Part shown: one piece after another, positions 5,031 to 51,351 of the stretch | Layout: each line of letters opens with the position of its first letter | How positions within the stretch are numbered: the stretch's first letter is position 1 | From: Bigelowiella natans CCMP2755 | Lineage: Eukaryota > Protista > Cercozoa | NCBI GenBank assembly: GCA_000320545.1 | Contig: ADNK01002208.1 | Coordinates: forward strand, 62,001 to 126,000 | Reading direction: 5' to 3' | Length of the DNA stretch: 64,000 nucleotides | Made by a program: the position numbers and the translations under genes | Notes under the pieces: generated by a model | What the model saw: only the letters and a program-made list of their open reading frames with translations | The model's database searches: none | Told to the model about the DNA's origin: nothing

Positions 5031-6228
5031 ATGGCGTCGGCTCTCCGCACTGCCATACGTGTGTGTGGTGGCGTCCGCCAAGTCACCATAGGCCAGAGGA
5101 GCCTTAGGTTTGATCTGACGAGAATTCGGGGATCTAGATTCTCGAAGCCAGCGAGCCTTTGGAAGTCCTTCTCCACTCAGACGAATCCATCTGAGGAGGC
5201 AAAAGATGATGAGAGGGAACCCTGGATGTTCATTGATGAGAGAATTAAGCCAAAATCGAGACCAGTTGGAGATCTTGTTCAGCAAGAGTGGCCCGCAGAG
5301 GAGGAAGCCGAAAGGGAATTCGTCGGTGAATTCATGAGGAGCAGCAAGGATTTCATCCAGGAGCAAGAGAAGCTTAAAGCTGTTAAGCCAGAATTTTACG
5401 CTAAGATCCGTCACGAGGAACAGATGAACAAGCATGAGAGCAAACGTTTGAGGGATGAAGGAAAGGTGAAGCATTTATTTTGCAAAGTCTCAACGATTTT
5501 AAGAGAGAGCTAATGAATTTAAAATAAAAACGTATTTTTTTAATTCACACTTGCGGCACTCTTATATGTTTTGGTGCGGTGAAGGGGGGATGGGGCTCGA
5601 TGGTTTTCTATTTCCAAATTTCCTTGTGGATTTTAACAATGTGGTTTTGTACCCTTAGCTGCCATGTCTCATCTACGGCCGGACCAAAAATCACCGATAT
5701 AAGCCTCTCCCTATAGCTCTTGAAGAGAGGCAAATTTTGAAACAAATGAAGCACCACGGACCCAGTTTCTTCGGTAAAATACCTATTCTCATGTTCAAAC
5801 CCATAATCCTATTACTGACTTAGATGTGTGCAGTCACAATATTTCGGATCAATATCGAAGGAAGGAAAGAAGGAATCTTAGTGAAGCCTCAGCAGATCCA
5901 GTACCACCCTGTTACACGAAAATTCGAATCATTGACCTTTGTGCGATGGTCTCCTGGAAAAAAAACTCGAGTTATTCTGCCAGTGCAAGTAATAGGTCAG
6001 AGGGATTGCATCGGAGTTAAAAATGGAGGGGCCATTATCCGTCCTGTAAAAGGAGTGAAATGTGTCTACGATGGCCCAGGCCCTTTACCGCGTGTCTTTA
6101 AATTAAACGTTCAGTCCTGGGGAGTCGGACACAAGTTCTACGTCAAGGACCTAGTGATGCCGGAACACACCAGGTTGAGACGGCCTGAAGTTGCTCATAC
6201 CCAGGTCCTGGTTTCCATCATAAAATAG
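5031..6228 (+). CDS. Ribosomal protein bL25 (CTC/TL5-type), likely mitochondrial
   Basis: SKRLRDEGK|LPCLIYG, VKPQQIQYHPVT and LPVQVIGQRDCIGVKNGG match the N- and C-domains of bL25/CTC. Arg/Ser-rich presequence MASALRTAIRVCGGVRQ. Confidence 0.88.
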
Positions 6229-6309
6229 CAGATGAGAAAAGAGTGCCATTCGTAAGCAGAAATGTTTTTTCCCTAGTACATTCATGCATGGCTCTATCAA
6301 AGCTATCAA

Positions 6310-6430
6310 TTAATTGAATCATACTATTCACACTATGACCACCGCGTATCATGATTGCTATATTGACTAGTTGAATCATACTATCTAGCTATGCACATGC
6401 ATGCACTATGCTAGTATGACCACCGCGTAT
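6310..6430. repeat. Local tandem duplication; the second copy carries three CTAG+4-bp-duplication insertions
   Basis: Copy A ttgaatcatactat..cactatgaccaccgcgtat versus copy B with ctagttga, ctagctat and ctagtatg inserted. Confidence 0.85.
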
Positions 6431-6789
6431 AAAATATTACTGTCATAATTTATTGGCCGCGAGTCGCGCGCGCAAATGTGCTACAATACAAGCGACACCA
6501 CTAGTCACTGCGCCCTGGCTAGAAGACTGTGTGCAATATTGCCATATATATCTCATATTGCATCATGTCTATCATCCGTACACCCATTTGTGGCGGCGAC
6601 GCAAGCACATTCTTAGCATGATCGACAAATCACAATTGTCGGTGTGTTATGGTGTTATGGTCACATAGCCACATCTAGGTATCTAGACGTTGCATTTCCA
6701 TCTTATGATGGACGCTAGTATTCGATCCGAAACAATTCCTAAAGCTACACAAGTTACGACGTGTACGTGTTACAGATATAAATTTCAAT

Positions 6790-9163
6790 CTAGCCAAATA
6801 AGTCATCATCGTCGTCGTCGTCACCAAACAATGACGACACAGTTGGAGCTGCCTTCTTAGTCGTAGTAGATGGTTTTTTGGCAAATAGGTCGTCTTCGTC
6901 ATCATCGCTGTCGCCGAAAAGACTAACTGAGGCAGCAGCAGCCGGTTTAGAAGATGACGATGCTGCTGATGGCGGCTTGTCATCTTTCTTCGTCGTCACC
7001 GATTTTGTACTATTTTTTTTGGAAAAGAGATCATCATCGTCGTCGTCGTCAACCATTTTCGCCGGTTTCTTCTCTACTTTTGACTTCGGCTTAGAAGAGA
7101 AGAGGTCGTCATCGTCGTCGTCGTCATCTCCGAATAAGGACACACTCTGTGTCTTCAATTCAGGACGTTGCTGCTGCTGCTGCTGCTCTTCTTGTTTGTT
7201 GTTGCTTGGAGTAGGAGCAGGGTCCTTTTTTTGCTCACGTGCTACCGTCTCTGCAATTATTATTCCAAACACAAACGATTTAAAAGCCTGTTGGGTGAAG
7301 AAAGTGGCTGCTTGACACAACCACGGCAGAAGTCGACAGCAATGCGCTCCTCTTTCATAAAATGATGATAATGATGATAAAATGATGATAATGATGATAC
7401 AGTTTCGAGCGATCTGTGCACATATCTTTATTGTCACATACCTGTAGCATCAACGTTTTGTTCGTTTTGCAATGGATCTGCAGCCACAGCGGAACTCTTT
7501 CCCTCCTCCTCCTCATCCTCCTCCTGCTCCCCCGAGGCTGCACTGTTGAAAGGATCTTCTCCAGCAAAGAGGTCATCTACAGGGGCCAACTTCTCTCGTG
7601 TGTTAGTCTTCAGAGCCTCCTCCGCGGCCTTCTTGGCTTTCTCCTCCTCCAGATTCTGCTGCTTCTGGGCTGTCGTAGTCGCAGGATCCCCGCTGCTTTC
7701 CGGTTTGAGCGAGATGACACCAGACTGGAAGCGCTTCTTTCTGGTCCGCCTTCTCCTGCCAGCAATTTTTGCTCGAGACATGTTTGCGTGCTCGATCACT
7801 TGCTCTGTTGGCTTCTTCTTCTCGTCGTCCTCCTCCTGCTGCTTCTCCCCTTGTGCTGGCTTCACGTCGCTGCTATTATTGCTTTCGCTCGAGGTACTAC
7901 GCCGTAGCCCAGGAGGCTTCCCTCCCATCATCGGATTAAAGTTTCCAAGCTTGCCTGCCAGAGCAGAGATCTGTGAAGATTTCTTCTTTCGCTTCCCTTT
8001 CATCTGCGGGGATTTCTTGCTGGTCGTAGTAACGGGCGAAGTAGTTGTTTCCTTTGCCGTGGGTTCTGTCTCTTTCTCCTTCTTCTTCTTGGCTTCTTCT
8101 TCTTCTTTATCCTTTTCCTTCTTCGCTTCATTCTCCTTCCTCTTCCTCTCTTCCTCCTTCTTCCTCTCTTCCTCCTTCTTCCTCTCTTCCTCCTTCTTCC
8201 TCTCTTCCTCCTCCTTCTGCTTTTGTGCTACCGCTGCTGCTGCCGCCGCCGCCGCGGCCGCCTCCTGTGCCTTCTTTGATTCCTCCTCCTTTTTCGCGGC
8301 GGCGGCGGCGGCGGCTGCTGCTGCTGCTGCTGCTGCTTTCTCCTGCTTAGCAGCATTTGCTGATGAGATGGCCGCTAAAGGATCTTCATCCCCAAATAAG
8401 TCGTCGTCATCGTCGTCATCATTCACTGGGCTTGATGTTGCTGGTACTCTCCCCGCTGGCTGCTGCCCTGCTGCTGCAGGTGCTACGCTTTTCGTCGTTG
8501 CCACCGATGCAGCCGCATTGTCTCCAAACAAGTCGTCATCGTCGTCGCCAAAAAGATCATCGTCGTCGTCGTCATGTGCTGTTGTAGCGGCCGGTTTTGG
8601 AGCAGACTTAGATGGCTGTGCTGTTGCCGTCTTTGGGGAGTCAGCCCCAAATAAGTCGTCGTCATCCTTGAAGAATACATGACAGGTTGTTCACATGCCA
8701 TCAGTACAGCATTATATCTTGCTCTTTCTTTTTTTTTTTTTTTAATCATTTTCATCATATCATCATCATGAACGTAATCTACCGATCTACCCACCAAGCC
8801 TTGGACAGCAACAAGTTTGAAGACATGGTCGTCGTTATCATCATCATCATCACCATCATCATCATCACATAACTTACATCGTCTCCGAAGAGATTCTCCT
8901 CGTCAACAACAGGCCGCGGTTCTGCGGTGGCGGGCTTTGCTTTCACTTCAGGCTTATCGTTATCCAAATACTGAGTAAAACCAGCTTTGCCAAACTTCTT
9001 GCTGATCCTTAGCTTCCCTGTTGGTTGACAAGAACGCATCAGCAACAAGTGATACGGTGATGATGATATTGCGGATAATGATGATGAAAATGGTAATGAC
9101 GATGATGATGGTAGGCAGTGAAGGGAAAAGGGAGCCGGGGAGGGAGAGGGAGAGGGAAGGGGG

Positions 9164-9204
<41 letters not shown>

Positions 9205-12200
9205 CCCATTCCTGGAAGCACTGCGGCATCTTTAGGCACAACAGGGTGTTCATCCTTCTTCGGACTGTTGCTTTCAAACAAATCGTCGTCTTCGTCGGCG
9301 TCAAATAGGCCTTGATTAGCTTTCTTCGGTGCTGTAGCAGCATTCTTTGCTTTCTTTTTCTTTTCAGCCGCTTCTGCTGCTATCCGTGCCTGCTTTTGGT
9401 TCTCGAGGCTTTGATGACAGAGCGAGGGAGATATGATAGAGCGATTGTAGAGGGGAGAAAGGGACATGATGTCAGTACTTTTGATTTGTCATTATGAAAC
9501 GCAATTTTAGAAGGTGGCAATATATACATGCATGGGTTCACTTAATTACGCTTTCATTTTCGCCTCCAACGAAGCTTCTTCCGCATTCAAAACGTCCGAA
9601 CGTCTCTGTGTAGTGCTGCTTGTCGCAGTAGCCGCCGCCTTTGCCTTTGAAGTGGACGACGCTCCAAAGAGATCGTCTTCATCGTCATCGTCGTCGCCAA
9701 ACAAGCTCTTGCTGGCTGCCGCTGCTTTTACTGCTAGATCGGTTTATTAAGAACAAAAAAGTGATGAGTGAAAAATAGCAAACAAGCGTAGTAATGAATG
9801 CGAGTTGTGTGTGTACGGTATGTGTTTACATAAGATATATATATATTCTTTGTATTTCTAATATTTACATGTATGGATATAATTTGCTCTTATGACTACA
9901 GTCAGTCTCTCCGGTCCTCCAATACCTTTGGTATTCGGTTGTTGTTTCTTCTTCCCCCCCCCTCCTCCGAAAAGATCATCGTCGTCGTCGTCATCGTCAT
10001 CGCCGAAAAGACTGCCGCCTCCTCCACCTCCGAGAAGGGGATCCTTTTTCGCAGAGCTAGTCTTCTCTGATGCCTTTTTGCCGCCACCAGCAGTAGCAGC
10101 CGTAGTTCCTCCTACTCCTCCTCTTCCTCCAGGCAACATCGCAGCTGGATTTATGGCGATCTTCTTCTGCAGGCTAGCAATCTTACCAGGCGCTGTTGCT
10201 GCTGACTTAGATTTTTTGACTTCGGTCTTCTTCTTAGTAGTAGTGCCGAAGAGGTCGTCGTCGTCGTCGTCGTCGTCGTCTCCAAACAAGCCACCGCCAC
10301 TAGCAATCGGTTTTGCCGCTGTCACCTTCGTTTTCGACTTGGATTTGGCAGCTGGGGACTTCGGCTTAGTTTTACTACTCGAAGCACCGAAAAGGTCATC
10401 GTCATCATCATCATCATCATCGCCGCCAAAGAGTGAGCTTGCAGGTTTGGCTGCTGCTGGTTTAGCTGCGGTTGTTGATGATGAAGACGGTTTTTTAGGT
10501 TTGGAGGATCCGAACAGATCATCATCATCGTCGTCATCATCGTCGCCAAACAGACCTGAAGAAGAAGCTGCAGCAGCAGGTTTTGGTGAAGGTTTGCTGC
10601 TGGCTGCAGGGGCGGGAGATCTCTTCGTTGCTTTAGCACCTAGTAAGTCGTCGTCGTCGTCGTCATCCCCAAATAGACCCCCCCCTCCACCAATACCGAC
10701 GCCAACTTTTCTTGGTGCTGCTGCTGGTTTCGGTTTCGCTGACTTCCTTCCACCCCCTCCAAACAAGTCGTCATCGTCGTCGTCATCATCATCTCCGAAG
10801 AGTGAATCACTACTTACAGGAGCTTTCTTCTTCTTCCCTGCTACTGCTGCTGCTTTTTTGGCTTGTTTTTTGGAAGAGGAGTTGCTTCCTCCGCCACCGA
10901 AGAGGTCATCATCGTCGTCATCGTCGTCATCACCGAAGAGAGCACTCTCATTAGCACTTGGCTTAGAAGGAGCAAACATGTCATTACTGCTTTTCTCCCC
11001 TCTTCCAGCTTTAGTCCTTTGTTTCGTCTCTTTCTTCTTCTCTTTCTTCGTGTTTGTGGAGGAAGAGGCCTTACTATCGTCAAACAAATCGTCGTCGCCT
11101 TCACCGGGTTCATCATCATCATCATCGTCGTCGTCGTCGCCACCAGCGCCAAATAGATTTTCGCTGTCTCCTCCGAACAGCATGCTTCCTTTCCGCCCTG
11201 GCTTCGCCTTACCAGACCCCCCTCCGCCGAAAAACCCTCCCCCCCCTCCTCCTCCAAATAGATCATCGTCGTCGTCGTCGCCTCCGAACATCATATCTTC
11301 GTCATCAGGCTGTGCAACAGGCAAAAATACGCTCAAGGGACTAATAGGTAAAACAGGTCCGAAAGAAACAATCATCCCCATCCACCGCTGCGAAACGCCG
11401 CTTCCTAGCTAGAATATAATATGATCGATGATGAAGCCTGTGCGAAAGGGCTCTTTGAGTGCGCTGATCACTCACAAAGCCCCTGTGTTGTCGTCGTCGT
11501 CAAAGCTATCTATATTTTATCATTGTTTTCTTATCTAAACATGACCAGTGTTCGATCATAACGCTTCCTGATTTTGGGTAAATGCTACAGATTAATACCT
11601 TCGTTGAGGAATGCTTTGCTTCCTGTGGCGAAGCTGTAGCATGCGAATTCTTCCTGCTGCTCCTCTTGCTCTTCTTTTTCTTCTTTTTACCTTTCGTCGC
11701 AATTGAGCCGGTTCGTGACCTACCTGCCGGCTGGGGAGGGCCTCCTCCTGTGAGAGCGGCAGCTAACTTTGATCGCAAGTCTGCCCCACCCATGGGTGGT
11801 GCTGCTGCGGCTGCCCGTGAACTTCTCCGAGATGTGCGACGGGAGGACTTGGCGGAAGGTTTCACAGATGCTGCTCCATCCCCGCCACCACTCTCTCCAA
11901 AAACGTCCTCATCGTCTTCGTCAAAATCGTCGTCGTCGTCGTCGTCTTGTGCACCCAATCCTGGAGGAAGGCTCCCTGGTGTGCCGGGGTGAATTGGAGG
12001 GCGCGGTGGCTTTGAAGCAGCACCAGATCCGCCCTCTCCAAACACATCGCTATCATCATCTTCGTCCTCGTCCTCGTCGCTGCTGTAGTCGCCGCCAGGA
12101 GGAGCTCCTCCTCCCCCCATACCAGGGGGTGGAAGTAGGCCGGACGGTGGAGCTGGTATACCTGGTCAGTTGAGACAAACACATTATGGGTGATGATGAC

Positions 12201-18554: not shown

Positions 18555-20724
18555 ATGACCGAAATGTATGCCCCCCCTCCAATCCGCTTGTTTTTATTTT
18601 CCTAGTTTCCCGCGTTGTATCATCAGCCATCTTATTTGGATCATTAATGCAATGATTCTTTGGTAGTCCGGAGTGTTCTTGGGCAGCACCCTAGCAAAGC
18701 CGAATTTGGGTACTCGTAGATGAATATCAGTATAAGCGAACGAAGTACGGAATGGGAGGACGATGAAGGCCTTGCACGAATCGAAATCAATGGAATTGTC
18801 TGCAAGACCACGTCATCGACGATAGAGAAACTCTGCAGCCTAGTCAAAGAGATAACAAATGAGACGTGCATTCATCCAGAAGACTCCTCTTCGATTACGA
18901 AATTGAACAAAAGACATCTTCGAGATTCAAAGGTTGCGGAGATCGATACAATATGTAAAAAAATTGTCACACTTTTTGAAATTTAAACCTGACCTGATTG
19001 AATCAACGCTGATTCACTGGCAATTTTTTTGTTATTACAGGGAAACGACGTTATCCCACAGGGGGTTGCTAGTTTCCAAATTGAAAGCGCAAAAGCGGTT
19101 GCGAAACCGTCTCTGGGGCATGGCTGTGCTGAGTACATATGGCGATGGAGACAAAAGAAACCTGTACGTATGATCAATAATCAAGATCATGATAGTCAAG
19201 AGCATAATTTTGATGCCAACCGTATCAAGTGATGATTCCATGACATAGATACAACGTTGTGGGACACCATTATCATGAGCACTTACACGCACGTGGTTCT
19301 GAATTGGGTTTTGGTTTTAACAGGCTCCTCCGTTTCATACCAAGAAATACATGAGTTGGTCCGTGCTAGGAGCATTCATAGGAATCGCATTGCTCGGTCT
19401 ACTTAATACCTTCGCCACAGAGGACACCGATTTGCTTTTTATCAGCAGTTCCTTCGGTGCACAAGTAAGTACTCTTATTACGCCTACACTTTGTTGGGTA
19501 TTTTGTACTCCAAAAGATCCTGTACCGCGATTCATTCAATGCGTTATGTACCATGCGAATGTTAGAGTGACGTCTTCTGTTTTGTATATCGCTTCAGGCC
19601 GTGCTGCTATTCGCTGCGCCTCATTCCACTTTAGCTCAGGTTGTTGATAATCTTACGGAAGTATTCTTAGCTTGAGGTGTATTGTGCACCTTTGTGGGTG
19701 TGTGTGTGTGTATGAGCGCGCGCACCTCATCTGCTCTGTGGCATTTGTGTTTTTGCTCCATGATTAGTTTTTGACAACTTCCTCATTGATTGTATCGTCC
19801 ATTTTTTGTCTTCAATTTCGGGTTCCAGCCGTGGAACTCCATCGTTGGAAATGGTTTGTCCGCTTTTGTGGGCATCCTGGTGCATTGGATACTCGGCAAT
19901 ATAGGTCGTGGTTATCATTTCATAGAGCTAACTATGAAGAAAAGGCTATGTCATGTTGATGATGAAGAGAGTGAGAATGATGGTATTAGAGAACTGTCGG
20001 AACAGTGCGGAATATTTCGATTGTAGCAGCCTTTGCAACACCTCAAAGAGAATTTTTTTATAGTTGTTCGCACTTTGCTGGTCCTCCACATTCATCCTCC
20101 TCCTATTTTTTTACGATGCCATGGCGTTGATATTGGTATTATTAGCCCCCCGATGGCTGATGATGGCTTTAAGCGTCTCGTTATCGACTTTGGCAATGCA
20201 TGTGTCAAAATCTATGCATCCTCCAGGTAGTTTTCTCACACACACAATCAATTATTGCCATATCTGCCAAGGATATAACGTCTGCGTCGTAGAATTTTAA
20301 AGTTGAAATGATACTCATTGGTCTTTCTTAACATTCGTATCAGGAGGTGCAACTGCTCTGATTGCCAGCTACCAAAAGGGAAGGGTTAAGGAACTTGGCG
20401 TTCTCTTCATTTTGTTTCCGACTGTCTTTGGATCGATTCTTCATATTTTAGTGGCGATGATACTGAACAACTGTATTGAAGACAAGGTGGCGTGAAGTAT
20501 AGACGTTTTTATTTACGATTATTCATTTTCCGTTCTCCTTCACTCGAACCTCTACCTCAACCTCCCCCCCTCCCCCCCCCTCTCTCTCTGTCTGAATCTT
20601 GAATTTCCCACTATGTGTGTTGGGTAAATAGGAACGAAACTACCCCTTATTTTGGGAACCTTTCAAGTGTCTTGGATACCACGGCAACAACACCGATGAG
20701 GCTGTCCAAACCGAGAATAGCTAG
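18555..20724 (+). CDS. HPP-family integral membrane protein (putative nitrite/anion transporter)
   Basis: Spliced SWSVLGAFIGI...SSFGAQ|AVLLFAAPHSTLAQ|PWNSIVGNGLSAFVG...SMHPP|GGATALIA...LVAMILNN...RNYPLFW carries all the HPP hallmarks. Start approximate. Confidence 0.9.
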
Positions 20725-22484
20725 CGAACAGAATGTTTAACGAGCATGGTATAACTATTTTGGCGGAAGGGGTTGCCTTGACCGAAGCCATATAGTTACA
20801 GGTGGGATTATGCGAAGGATCTTTACCATTAAAGATTTATACTTTTAAAATATAGGCCATAGATGTTTACCAGTGTCCATGCACATCGCGCATGTCAGAT
20901 ATGCGTCCACGTGATTTTTGGTGACGTCGTTGCCATTGATTAGCATTCAGACCTGCAGAAATTATAGGTTGTGACGATGTACAATTGGCCTTCATTCTCA
21001 AAATTACTTAACAGATGGAGTAATGACACCATCATACGTGCATGCTGTATGGCGATGCCGATCGCAAGCATATGCATGGCGACAATGCATGGCGGTGCGT
21101 GTGACGTGCTTTGGATCAAAATTGTGTCGGGCTTCTTTGTCAAAAATTACATCAAGTAGATCTAGAGTTTTTCGATCCTCTCATACTCTAGCCATGGCCA
21201 CGGCGTCGTGTGTATACAGTGTGCGTTCACCTAAGCTGAGCATGGCATAGCGGCAGCGCGTGATCGATGCGAGTCTTCTGCGATTTAATCATTTGATTCG
21301 TCTCGATCATGGACACAACATCTAACAGAGACAAGCGTTGCACACACACACACACACACACACATGCACATGTGCACATGCTGTCCCACACAAACATTTA
21401 CAACACTTTGTTTGCACATGGCATGTACGTGCACACGTACATGTGCACATCATGGAGACACGTTCTGCACACGTGTGCATGTCACCCTGCACACAGAGAC
21501 ACGCACACACACATACATGCCTTTGCATATGCTAGTACGTCTCTCTGACATGCATGTCAAGAATCCTTGGGATGCCTGGTTCCATGTGCATCAAACGACG
21601 TGCCCCACCTTTTGTGCGTCGGCAACATTGTCGCCACGACATTGTGTCAGACTACGTGTAGCAGGGTGCAGTGTGCTAGTGTGCCAAATCTTGCTAGCTT
21701 GGCTTCACACCGCCCATGCACTGCTAGCGACTGCCGCATGTGTCGATTCCGGCCACGCTAGCACGGCTAGATCGACGGGCAAGATGACAACTAGTGGTGA
21801 CGCTGGTCCGGGAAGAGGTGCCAGTAGAGACTCCACGGACTCCAGACTCACATCACTGGTGCCGCCTACTGCCTGGTGCCCAGATTTCGTGAGACAACAA
21901 GCACATTGCACACCAGTGCAGGCTGTTCTTGCCGCTCATGCTTGGTGGATGCTCCACATGCATGGCAGACAGTGACATCATCATCATCGTGTGGCTCATT
22001 GCTGCGCAGTGGGGACGTTGCATTGGCGCTGGGGCCGCTCTGTGCCACGCGGATGCGCTCGATTGTGTGCGGCCTTTCACGGTGCTGCGGTCTAGCGGTC
22101 CCAGTGTCCGCACAATCGCATCGAGCGTTGGCCTTGGCCCTGTTCAAATTTGATCTTGCATCATGAGGCGCTGCACCGAACATCAAGAAGATCATGCAAC
22201 AGGCTTTGATTCCGTAGACTAGTAGAGTCGCTAATGTCCAATGTCAGCTCTAGTACATTGCGGTCCGTTGTACCGCCCCGCCCTGCTGACTTTTGCGGCA
22301 TGCACAGTATCACCAGCGTAGCACTAAGAAAGGGCAGAAACAACGTCACAAATTGTCCATAGAGTCCTCATGGTTTCTAATTTGAATCCAGAATTCCAGT
22401 CTCATTAGTATTGCAAAGCAACGACAATTGTAGTCTAGTAGTGCGTGATCAATAAATGGCTGCCGAATCTCAAACCCGCATAAA

Positions 22485-23547
22485 TCATTCCACCGAAGGC
22501 AAGCTTAGAGACATAAATATAGCTGTCTCAACGCCATCGTAGTAGTTCGGTCTTTGACCTACGTCTATGAATCCAAGATCTTTGTACAGCTGTCTCGCTG
22601 CTTCGTTAGACTCTCGAACCTGCACAGGGGGCGATAAAGTATCAAGATGTGACATTGTATTTCATTTTCTGGTGTATCACACAACAATATATGCTACCTC
22701 GAGAAGAATTTCTCGTGCCCCAAGTTGCTCTCCTTTCTTGCAAAGCTGCTCAAGGAGTTTGGTAGCGACGCCTTTTCTGATCGTTGTGGATGGTGGTGTC
22801 GTTAGGTAAAGTAAAATTTCAGTACTTGCAATGAACCTTCTATAACATGGAAGCACAAAAAGGTTTCCGATTTCCAACTGATCTACGATGTGCCACGCTA
22901 CCTGTTGAAGTAATAACATACGGCATATAGGAATCAATTAGGGAAAGACATATCATGTGGGCATTAATATTCGTTTTGGTATTGATATTATTCTAAGGAC
23001 TCACAATAATAGCCGCAAAGACTGTCGTCGCAGGATCATCAAGTTCCTCCGCAACTAGGATGTGGGTGTTTGGATCATTAACTTCTCGTTCCCAATTTTC
23101 ATTACTCCAGCCCGTGCCAAGGTTGCAACCCCGGAAGGCAACTTTAATCTCATCGAGATCTTGCAAGCTTGCTTCGCGTACTTGTAGACTGCAACACGTT
23201 CTCAATACCCGAAAGTTTTGTTCCCCAAGAAAGCTATTACTTCGATGCATATCCTGTTGTTTGGAGAGTACTCTAATATTTTTCCTTCCCCCCCTGAAGC
23301 TTGAAATAATTCAAGGGAATCTTAAAGTACGGTAGATATTCAAGAATTGTATTTCACAACCAACTTGTCAAATGAGGAAAGACTTTAAGGAAATCAATTG
23401 CAGATGAAACTAAATGGAAATCGACTTAAATTACCTCTTAGAAGTTCGGCTAAGAACGAAGCTTGGGCTCGAAGGAAATGATGACATTCCGATAAGGATG
23501 ATGGCCACAAGACCCACCACGATCTTTGTTATGGAGGCACCATCCAT
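22485..23547 (-). CDS. RimI-like GNAT N-acetyltransferase with bipartite targeting leader
   Basis: LEIGNLFVLPCYRR|KGVATKLL (acetyl-CoA motif A) and ILLE|VRESNEAARQLYKDLGFIDVGQRPNYY. Hydrophobic N-terminus MDGASITKIVVGLVAIILIG followed by an S/R-rich segment. Confidence 0.9.
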
Positions 23548-23720
23548 TGTTCGTCGAATAGGCACATTCACACATGTAAGTCGGTAAAAGTTGTGGAAGC
23601 AAACATGCTGGAATTATTCTACAATTCTCCTCCTCCTCCGCCTCCTCTCATTCTCAGCCGTCGGCGTCGGCGTCGTCGTCGGTTGTTGTTATTGTTGCCA
23701 TCAAACCGAGCACACGGCAG

Positions 23721-24338
23721 AAATATCATCGATAGTTTTGAGACCGAACTCAAAATTTGCGAATACGTCCACGATGCCTTCAGTCCGATCTCAAACACGG
23801 TGGTGGGCGATCCTTTCGGCTTCACATGGATCAACCACGTCAAAGAGATCAAGGATGAGAATGTGTTCTTCACATGTGCGGAAGTGAGCCTGTCTCTGTC
23901 AACATCAACATGCCGGGTTGGAGAAAATGGTGATCGCAGCACTTGGGCTTCCCTCTCTTCATGAGCTGCGGTTGGCTGACATTGTGACAACAGCTAGACA
24001 GAGACGATCCATCAAAAGAGTGTGAACATTGCACAGCGCACGTGTTGAGGCTGAAGTGGTTTGCTAGGGAGTTCATTGAGAAAGATGCACTGCACAGCAT
24101 GGATCGTGTGCGGAAGTTGCATCTCTGGGAAAAGCGTGAGTCGCCATGTCCACACGTGAAGCGAGAAGGCACTTGCAGACTCCATGGAAACAAAGGACAA
24201 GGAGTGGTGGAACACACACTTTGGGCTTTGCGAAGTTCAAAGGGCATTCAAATGCCTTTTCAGTGCAAGTTCAGAGACCCAGTGGTTCCACACAACACTC
24301 TGTTTCCAGAGACAGTTGCTCCGCCAGTGCTGTGCTAG
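23721..24338 (+). pseudogene. 5'-truncated two-exon gene fragment, TpA-hypermutated
   Basis: Exons 23721-23883 and 23994-24338 join in frame across a GT-AG intron. There is no room for a 5' end before the RimI start. Exon 2 has 0 Tyr, 8 His and 6 Cys in 114 aa. Confidence 0.7.
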
Positions 24339-25327
24339 GGCGGCTTCAGGAGAGTGCAGAGACGCGTTTGTTTCTTTGAATGCATGAGTGCAACAAAGAA
24401 TTGGCAATTGTTCTCCCTGAAAGTGTGTTTGTCACACATGAATCCTTTGGTGAAAACCTGCAAGGGGGATGGAAGCGCATGATTGGACACAATCATGGAC
24501 ACGTGATGCCACACGTGTGCTGCACATGTGTGATGTCACTTTGATGTTGCTTTGTCGATCCATCATCACATTGCTAATTGAAAGGCGAAAATTGCTGGAA
24601 GCAAAGAGCTGGTGCTCTCAAGATCTTCAAAAATCATGAACTAGGAACGGTTTGGAATTCAAGGTCCCTCGGTTTCGGCCCATTTTCGCAAAGTTTCCAT
24701 GCGCATGCTGAGCTGAGCTAGCACGTGTGACTGTCGTGCCTGTCTAGCTGTGCCACGAGTAATCATGCAATCAATGATCACAGTGACATTGATGGACACA
24801 ACTCTAGAACTAGACAATGATGACACACCACACACGCATGGTGACGGTCTAGCGGTGGGCCCTCAAAAGAAGCACAGGAGCAGTCAAAATGCATGTATGT
24901 GAACGGGGTGAGTCAGAGTTGTTCACCCATCGCTCTCACACGAGCTAGTGAGCACCACTTGCCTCCACGAGTGACTCATGCCATGGTCCGTCTTTGCAGC
25001 ACATTGTGCATCATCGTAGGCAGGGCGTGCTAGCGTAGCAACTTGCAGACTTGCGTGCACGTTCCCATATACCCAAATACTCGCTCTGCTGACTTCCGGT
25101 ACATTAACAGGCTCAGCGTGACATGTACTGAAATGAACAAGCATGACGGGGCTATCACTTTTTTGTGCGTGCAGCGTAGTAGCTGCGGGATTGCACTTGC
25201 GGGATCGAGAGTCTATACACTTTGTTTTAATTCTGCATCGAAATGTATCGTTCAACGCAGCGGATCTGGCATATTCGAAGCAGGAATCTAGGATAATCAT
25301 AGAGTGTGATATCGGGGTGCCTTGCAG

Positions 25328-37368: not shown

Positions 37369-37683
37369 ACATAGCACGAATTGCTAAGGTGCCGTTCCAA
37401 TTTCCTCGACAAATACAACGATTTTGGTTGTGTGTGTGTTATGCTATGCCTTGATGCTTTATGTAAGTGGTCGCAATGTGCTTCGAATCGTCATCCTTCT
37501 GAGGAATAAAAGAGCAGATCGACGTGCCAGGGAAGGAACAGCTCAGTTGATGAAACAATGGCGTGCAGATGTGCAGCAGGAAATATATACTCTATCTGTT
37601 TCGGTCACCACGGCACATACAATCGTGATAAACTACGCACACCATCATTACACAGTAGTCGACAAATCTAGAAAGTCGTAGGA

Positions 37684-37810
37684 CTCGGTTGCACGTACTC
37701 TTTACAATGACAAACGATCGTAACCTAGGACTCGCTAGCTCGGTTGCACGTGCTCTGTGCAATGATAAACGATCGTGAGGCATCAACATCGCGGACATCA
37801 ACATCGCGGA
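37684..37810. repeat. 40-bp diverged tandem duplication plus a 15-bp perfect direct repeat
   Basis: 37684-37723 versus 37739-37778 (5 mismatches); catcaacatcgcgga x2 at 37781-37810. Confidence 0.9.
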
Positions 37811-50509: not shown

Positions 50510-50675
50510 TATGTATATATGAGACGGATGTAATGAAGAATTAAATTTTTTCAATGGTCATCCTGATGTAGCTGTGCAATGCAGCGGCATGTATATATGA
50601 GACGGATGTTATGCGTTTTGATTAAATCTTACCAATGCTAGAATGGTCATCCACTAGTATCCTGATGTAGCTGTT
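50510..50675. repeat. ~70-bp diverged tandem duplication; the second copy carries two palindromic insertions
   Basis: atgtatatatgagacggatg...caatggtcatcctgatgtagctgt is repeated, and copy B has ctagaatg and actagtatcc inserted. Confidence 0.85.
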
Positions 50676-51351
50676 TAGCCTGTACGTGCGAAGCTGCGGC
50701 TACATGTACATGTACATATAGAGAGAGATAACAAGTGATACATTGGACATGTGTCTGCTGTGCATAGAGATCGAGCGACGTGCTAGTGTAAGCTAGATAG
50801 AGAAAGCTGAATAAGATAAGCGTACATGGCACGTTTTACGACGTGCCATGAAACAACTGAGTCCTGTCTATAGTTCTTTGTCTAGATATATTCACATTGA
50901 TATGTGCGATGCGATGGTCTGCTAGTTGCCAGTGGCACGTCTCAAAGTAAGTACGTGCGTATGCGAGCTAACGTACGAATCTATGCACACCGAATTAGCG
51001 AAGGCCGCATGATCAATGATGAAGGTACGTGTGCAGTGAAGCCACTGCTACTGCATCGGCTATGGAAGTGTACGTCGGGCAATTCATCGCCGTCATTATT
51101 GCATCGCATGATGCTCTCCGCTTTGCTATATCACCTCTTCAACGCTAGCACAAATTACTTTCCCCCTGCTCTCCACTAGCTCCTCTATCGCACATCGCAT
51201 TTACAACGAACAATGACACACGAAACCTTCACTTAAAAGCGCGAGCATTGCAATTTACTATGTGGAAGTTATACTCAAGTGCATCGATTATTAGATCATG
51301 CGTGACTTGTTGTGACGATGCTATCATCCTCAATCGCCAACAGGCACTTGA

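Follow-up and report, generated by a model that had tools for sequence, protein, structure and literature searches.

The genome of Bigelowiella natans carries about 30,000 scars of a single stereotyped kind, in each of which the four bases CTAG have been inserted together with a second copy of the four bases beside them (N4-CTAG-N4). We came upon these scars in a small tandem duplicate behind a gene for a bL25-type ribosomal protein, where the three CTAG blocks of one copy are three independent instances of this genome-wide mutation, and we propose that the scars are probably excision footprints of a cut-and-paste (DDE-type) transposon with a 4-bp stagger and ends reading CTAG. The analysis used three samples: the window (the whole 64-kb stretch of DNA analysed here), 192 kb of the contig and the whole 91.4-Mb assembly. 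Coordinates of the main features are given in Table 1.

Table 1. Positions of features in the 64-kb window.
Feature	Position	Strand	Remarks
bL25-type ribosomal protein gene, last coding stretch	5824..6228	+	ORF; stop TAG 6226-6228
Tail-to-tail spacer between bL25 gene (+) and acidic-repeat gene (-)	6229..6789		TpA observed/expected 1.10, normal
Copy A of tandem duplicate	6302..6349	+	Three sites, all empty; from alignment
12-bp perfect palindrome TCAATTAATTGA	6306..6317		Copy A only, through its 6-bp surplus over B
Copy B of tandem duplicate	6357..6430	+	Three scars; from alignment
Scar 1, TTGA-CTAG-TTGA	6363..6374		In copy B
Scar 2, CTAT-CTAG-CTAT	6381..6392		In copy B
8-bp surplus ATGCATGC	6397..6404		In copy B; not of N4-core-N4 type
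Scar 3, TATG-CTAG-TATG	6407..6418		In copy B; equals G000:C1529:68407-68418
3' end of gene rich in D-rich LF(G) repeats	6790..7437	-	Stop codon 6790-6792
Second empty/filled pair	37681..37751		Empty 37681-37696; filled CTCG-CTAG-CTCG, 37728-37751
Two adjacent LINE 3' tails	50514..50680	-	Tail 1 50514-50588; tail 2 50596-50680
AATG-CTAG-AATG scar	50634-50645		In LINE tail 2
10-bp variant ATCC-ACTAGT-ATCC	50649-50662		In LINE tail 2

The duplicate lies between two genes that face each other tail to tail. The bL25 ORF matches the Pfam family Ribosomal_TL5_C at 31.5 bits (cut-off 27) and L25p in part, while an exact-protein look-up returned no record, a homologue search of the ORF no match and a scan of the locus against metagenomes no match. 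From the opposite side the minus strand of 6790-11400 carries one or more long genes built of repeats in which a D-rich run is followed by LFG; these resemble the LFa motifs of FAM21/WASH-complex proteins, and the part tested gave no Pfam match. A TTC/CTC-rich repeat that takes in 8147-8204 also lies within this gene. At the duplicate itself we found no Rfam family and no notable fold. The 31-mers sampled from 5600-7000 were all present in 14 DNA runs from 11 studies, which, being possible sources of the same DNA, measure reproducibility and not strain diversity.

The two copies of the duplicate differ by the scars and in a few other ways. Apart from the latter, copy B aligns as copy A plus three 8-bp blocks, each made up of CTAG and a duplicated 4 bp; the alignment supplies exact coordinates for what the first-pass annotation had read from the letters, namely three CTAG blocks in copy B and none in copy A. 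Copy A lies 74-121 nt beyond the bL25 stop and the copy B scars 135-190 nt beyond it. The further differences are one T/G substitution and a surplus in each copy, of 8 bp in B and of 6 bp in A. That of B (ATGCATGC) may be a doubling of ATGC or the result of slippage, and the palindrome that the surplus of A creates (TCAATTAATTGA) looks like a small snap-back duplication. As this surplus is private to A, copy A does not preserve the unaltered empty state. The annotation had also singled out the string GCAC-ATGCAT-GCAC in copy B (6393-6406) as a second palindromic linker; the string is real, but six-base palindromic cores between 4-bp repeats are no more common than chance (25 versus 23 expected), so that neither ATGCAT nor ACTAGT forms a class. 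Likewise, CATG-ACTAGT-CATG occurs once genome-wide (control 3), and the 10-bp variant in LINE tail 2 at 50649-50662 is therefore a rarity.

Comparison of related copies tells which state came first. Three empty/filled pairs within the window show that the scar arose by insertion, of CTAG together with a second copy of 4 bp, as had been claimed from the duplicate alone. The bL25 locus is thus one more scar island, and its A/B pair shows the insertion directly. In a second example, a pair further along the contig has one empty and one filled site (Table 1). In a third example, two LINE 3' tails lie next to each other, and the second carries a perfect scar as well as the 10-bp variant. The genome contains at least 1,390 candidate copies of this LINE's 75-nt tail; the top 40 of those scored show 80-100% identity, and the insert is missing from their alignments. 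Two other, independent LINE tails carry, at a site common to the two, CAAT-CTAG-CAAT in one and CAAT-CAG-CAAT in the other, and the consensus lacks the CAAT-CTAG-CAAT scar. Taking the family consensus as an outgroup makes the scars of tail 2 derived, and this outgroup-type comparison favours insertion over precise loss. Nor can the filled state have been the ancestral one in all three pairs by chance, since every case requires a 1/256 match. We conclude that the scarred state derives from an ancestral empty one.

The LINE family itself is young and very abundant, encodes an endonuclease and a reverse transcriptase, and has many tails that are 97-100% identical. Its copies are 5'-truncated to every length, and the tails are often adjacent within scar islands; further members lie near 19751, 42785 and 144845 of G000:C1529. 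A full 5-kb copy with intact ORFs of 483 and 1,158 aa is present on the metagenome contig L026 (190-5160). The flank of this environmental copy contains three perfect scars in 190 bp and has no match in the present genome; wild relatives therefore carry scars too.

Scars are far more frequent than chance allows, in agreement with the earlier claim that the motif is no accident. A 4-bp direct repeat flanks 24 of the 177 CTAGs of the window (0.7 expected) and 68 of the 518 in the 192 kb of contig (2 expected). The repeat is specifically four bases long: across the same 192 kb we count 68 versus 2 expected for four bases, 8 versus 8 for three and 5 versus 0.5 for five, the last a small excess. 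Among cores of 1-8 bases between 4-bp repeats, CTAG alone is conspicuous. Across the assembly, CATG-CTAG-CATG occurs at 3,828 loci versus 7 for the reversed control, and TATG-CTAG-TATG at 299 (control 6), scar 3 of copy B among them. Scaling the 192 kb to the genome gives ~32,000 perfect scars, which we report as about 30,000. The use of CATG in 8 of the 68 scars predicts ~3,800 CATG-CTAG-CATG loci, close to the 3,828 counted.

These counts make it virtually inconceivable that the scars arose by chance, microsatellite slippage or misassembly. Slippage could at most account for the growth of the (CTAG)3 cases described below, and against an origin of this sort stand the excess itself (68 versus 2; 3,828 versus 7), the diversity of the duplicated 4-mers, the reproduction of the locus in the 14 runs and the presence of scars in the environmental contig.

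The core of the scar is highly uniform. Of 10,653 CATG-N4-CATG sites in the genome, 36% have the core CTAG and 46% a core of the form CYRG, which takes in CTAG and its TpA-mutated derivatives, and there is no second dominant core. There is a minor core of three bases, C(A/T)G, seen in 478 CATG-CWG-CATG sites versus 38 in the control. Aged copies can also be recognized: duplications with one mismatch around CTAG number 43 versus 23 in a shifted control, and CCAG and CTGG cores 23 versus ~4 expected.

Choice of target follows a simple rule that reads the same on both strands. The first duplicated base of the 68 scars is C in 37, A in 20, T in 11 and G in none; the last is G in 35, T in 23, A in 9 and C in 1, the complement of which (C35, A23, T9, G1) is the mirror image of the first. 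Other CTAGs have C before them in 17% of cases and G after them in 17%, and the rule is therefore not an artefact of context. Genome-wide counts by duplicated 4-mer are 3,828 loci for CATG, 1,117 for AATG, 299 for TATG, 102 for GATG, 134 for TGCA and 2, the chance level, for GATC. Per available site and relative to CATG, use is 1/7 for AATG, 1/18 for TATG, 1/105 for GATG and at most 1/1270 for GATC. The first base is hence preferred in the order C > A > T >> G (1 : 1/7 : 1/18 : 1/105), which can be written as the rule H-N-N-D, and all three targets in copy B (TTGA, CTAT, TATG) fit it. The preferences are roughly multiplicative, with roughly independent half-sites, and look like the signature of a two-fold symmetric dimer whose cuts fall 5' of C on both strands, four bases apart. 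CTAG can in turn become a target, with N4-(CTAG)3-N4 as the product, and removing scars in silico exposes three nested ones.

The symmetry of this rule bears on an origin in retrotransposition, in which a very truncated, 4-base cDNA reading CTAG would be patched by reverse transcriptase into the staggered nicks of a retroelement endonuclease. The islands do house a highly active LINE family along with the scars, and its truncation to all lengths would suit such a patch. Against this, the target preference is mirror-symmetric on both strands whereas target-primed reverse transcription is asymmetric, the LINE 3' end reads ...CTCATATA and not CTAG, and endonuclease-type LINEs make duplications of variable length; we find the idea scarcely credible. 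Three further mechanisms were considered and rejected: cuts by endonuclease V or an AP-endonuclease at deaminated TpA would have the wrong stagger polarity, telomerase-type addition from the nucleomorph TCTAGGG repeat does not fit with G following CTAG in 0 of 68 scars, and with hairpin P-nucleotides the core would change with the target.

Scars are strongly clustered, concentrating in small non-coding islands that lie behind genes or in silent DNA. The 68 scars in 192 kb form ~20 clusters, with 29 of 67 gaps at most 100 bp long versus 2.3 expected under a Poisson model. Wherever a crude coding-potential track gives a call, the genes point towards the scar clusters. For the seven gene ends whose stop codon is credible, the distance from stop to nearest scar is 135-548 nt. 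That copy A lies closer to its stop (74-121 nt) is at most an indirect hint that it may belong to the bL25 3' UTR. The first-pass annotation had read the contrast between copies A and B as local clustering or as purifying selection on the copy nearer the gene. Clustering holds genome-wide, but it does not follow from the pair alone: three of three scars in B gives a two-sided p = 0.25 on the assumption of equal targets in both copies, which is a sign neither of selection nor of extra clustering.

The scars have decayed with time. A mutator that changes TpA to TpG/CpA has been published for Bigelowiella natans (bioRxiv 10.64898/2026.01.13.699255), and its TpA signature is visible in the sequence analysed here. 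Genome-wide, 1,022 of 4,850 CATG scars (~21%) have an altered core TA, and this loss matches the published mutator. The scars are also spread in age. Two stretches of the window are poor in TpA, 21541-22200 (observed/expected 0.36), in which 7 of 11 leftover TA lie inside CTAG, and 23766-24759 (observed/expected 0.11), in which 6 of 7 do; with 13 of the 18 leftover TA of both islands inside CTAG, many scars are therefore later than the TpA erasure. The 3.7-kb TpA-poor island at 21300-25000 is single-copy and has no Pfam domain. From the mismatch ratio we infer a mean scar age of ~4% divergence, which by way of the published mutation rate corresponds to new scars at roughly 3 x 10^-4 per genome and generation. 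The published mutation-accumulation lines span ~3,100 generations, as computed from their published rates, and none of their 21 de novo indels contains CTAG (bioRxiv 10.64898/2026.01.13.699255), where by our rate estimate ~1 event was expected. This count neither shows nor excludes current activity.

The same decay speaks to programmed DNA removal, in which germline-like or life-stage elements would be cut precisely from the sequenced vegetative cells and leave CTAG behind. Such removal would suit ~30,000 scars with no resident element found, and a uniform junction centred on TA. On the other hand, the scars age as neutral DNA ordinarily does, by decay and mutation, and differ among young paralogous copies, as one-off events do, and to our knowledge nuclear dimorphism is not known in chlorarachniophytes. 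We consider programmed removal very improbable.

Based on these data, we favour the transposon reading, in which the scars record the arrival and subsequent departure of a cut-and-paste element. We infer the element, its CTAG ends, its enzyme and its excision chemistry as follows. A two-fold symmetric enzyme would join the element at a 4-bp staggered cut, made 5' of C (or of A or T, almost never of G) on each strand and with CATG as the best target, and gap repair would give the 4-bp duplication. At excision, element ends reading CTAG would be cut so that both flanks retain CTAG, either as four self-complementary overhanging bases or as 2+2 bases, and the flanks would then anneal and be ligated into an identical scar each time. 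In one variant, the non-transferred strands would be cut four bases inside the element, leaving self-complementary overhangs that could be ligated without loss; under this scheme, loss-free ligation would account for the uniform scar. Uniformity this high is unusual for end-joining repair and counts against the transposon reading.

Several known systems resemble the scars in part. Tc1/mariner elements, among them Tc1 and Minos, leave excision footprints, and the canonical footprint of Sleeping Beauty is TA-C(A/T)G-TA. These footprints share with the scars two target duplications around a few constant bases from the element ends and a palindromic form owing to inverted-repeat ends, and the minor C(A/T)G core described above resembles that of Sleeping Beauty. 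They differ in that the duplication here is a 4-bp H-N-N-D sequence and not TA, the core comprises four self-complementary, almost invariant bases, ~30,000 scars lie in islands behind genes, and the element is a candidate only. The excision that we propose would amount to the Tc1/mariner scheme with a longer stagger. PiggyBac elements have a 4-bp duplication and staggered 4-base chemistry, but their target is TTAA and their excision scarless, whereas here the targets are H-N-N-D and the scar stays. Topoisomerase II-linked duplications of 2-4 bp arise from a filled-in 4-base 5' stagger and are enriched between converging genes; their signature has no inserted core, whereas here CTAG always stands between the copies. 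In ciliates, IES excision by domesticated piggyBac transposases gives precise uniform junctions from 4-base TA-centred overhangs, with the elements absent from the sequenced nucleus, and leaves TA. By contrast, the scars here behave as old neutral mutations, and we know of no germline/soma split in this alga.

Two further groups share bases with the scars. Harbinger-type excision is usually seamless. The PHIS superfamily (PIF/Harbinger, NuwaI with CWG, NuwaII with C|TNA|G) and bacterial IS5 use palindromic C...G targets, and PHIS groups duplicate 0-3 bp, possibly 5, a length of 4 not being described (PMC4482050). The outer C and G of palindromic targets, and the presence in this genome of the DDE_Tnp_4 domain, liken PHIS elements to the scars; the 4-bp duplication sets the scars apart, and the copies sampled here are dead. 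As for Helitrons, their 3' ends reportedly carry a constant CTAG (PMC10095026), which likens them to the scars in having this tetranucleotide at an element boundary, but they insert between A and T with no target duplication, whereas here a varied 4-bp sequence is duplicated.

The search for the element covered ~0.25% of the genome, a sample that rules out only families of more than ~1,000 copies. Within the 192 kb of contig there was no element that combined CT..AG ends with inverted repeats and an exact 4-bp duplication. A wider search for CTAG...CTAG pairs, for any inverted-repeat element with a 4-bp duplication and for short remnants returned none in the 192 kb and part of ~38 kb of further loci, and there was no element among 100 listed genome sites at which CATG-CTAG is followed by a base other than C. 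This failure weighs little, as a few active copies would suffice. The candidates that did come up were rejected: an intron-like stretch within Harbinger paralogues is not an element, a 231-bp stretch at 24718-24948 is single-copy, and other inverted-repeat or CTAG-ended matches are due to chance. A recurrent CTAG-CATTGAGG belongs to a 179-bp tandem repeat, one recurrent sequence after CATG-CTAG is internal to the LINE, and another has two copies only. Tandem units of ~179 bp, 79-87% alike and each with an AATG-CTAG-CATT palindrome, occupy G000:C1529:162506-164045 (L011, L012), beyond the window.

Among transposase domains, that of piggyBac (PF13843, DDE_Tnp_1_7) has no match in this genome, but none in the control genomes either. 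The DDE_Tnp_4 domain of the PHIS superfamily has at least 15 matches in the genome and is not tied to the scars. All ten sampled Harbinger-type copies (L015-L024, on contigs C777, C1193, C2929, C1777, C1458, C891, C2101 and C2246) are TpA-erased relics, nine of them with a TpA observed/expected of 0.01-0.24 across the locus; judged by eye, L024 has a transposase stretch that looks TpA-depleted between TA-rich flanks. One of these copies retains a 527-aa stop-free frame despite having no TA at all.

That no element was found is one of the points in favour of a nuclease writing CTAG directly, without a long mobile element. A two-fold symmetric enzyme of host or viral origin, such as a restriction-like enzyme specific for CTAG/CNNG or a transposase that has been domesticated, would cut silent DNA and the DNA behind genes with a 4-base stagger, the ends would be filled in and CTAG would be added in a fixed manner. 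The favoured targets (CATG, CTAG and generally C..G) do look like the inserted CTAG, the core is extremely uniform, and the scars keep closely to the DNA behind genes and to TpA-erased islands. Against these points, the element search had little power, fill-in of a 4-base stagger alone gives N4N4 with no core, and no chemistry known to us would place a constant tetranucleotide at a break that has been filled in. We regard direct writing as unlikely. A host-run origin, whether by programmed removal of elements or through a domesticated symmetric nuclease that tags silent foreign DNA and the sequence just beyond gene ends, we consider improbable.

Our literature search found no paper describing the CTAG scars. 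Excision footprints are of a known kind; it is the combination of an H-N-N-D 4-bp target, an invariant CTAG core, ~30,000 copies and confinement to islands that is without description in the literature searched. New here are the quantified target rule, the genome-wide counts, the polarity test on LINE tails, the use of the TpA mutator as a clock and the statistics of the A/B pair. With about one fifth of them lacking the core TA, the scars provide a neutral clock for the published mutator. An element with a 4-bp stagger at CNNG, CTAG ends and reliable re-excision is likewise without description in the papers that could be searched. If no such element exists, the process itself would be new, and if a host-run system were true, it would be a new kind of eukaryotic genome-editing activity. 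If the scars are excision footprints, their uniformity constrains the chemistry of excision, and Bigelowiella would provide a natural record of cut-and-paste transposition larger and cleaner than any other known to us, with ~30,000 dated events, a sharp target rule and a preference for DNA just past gene ends.
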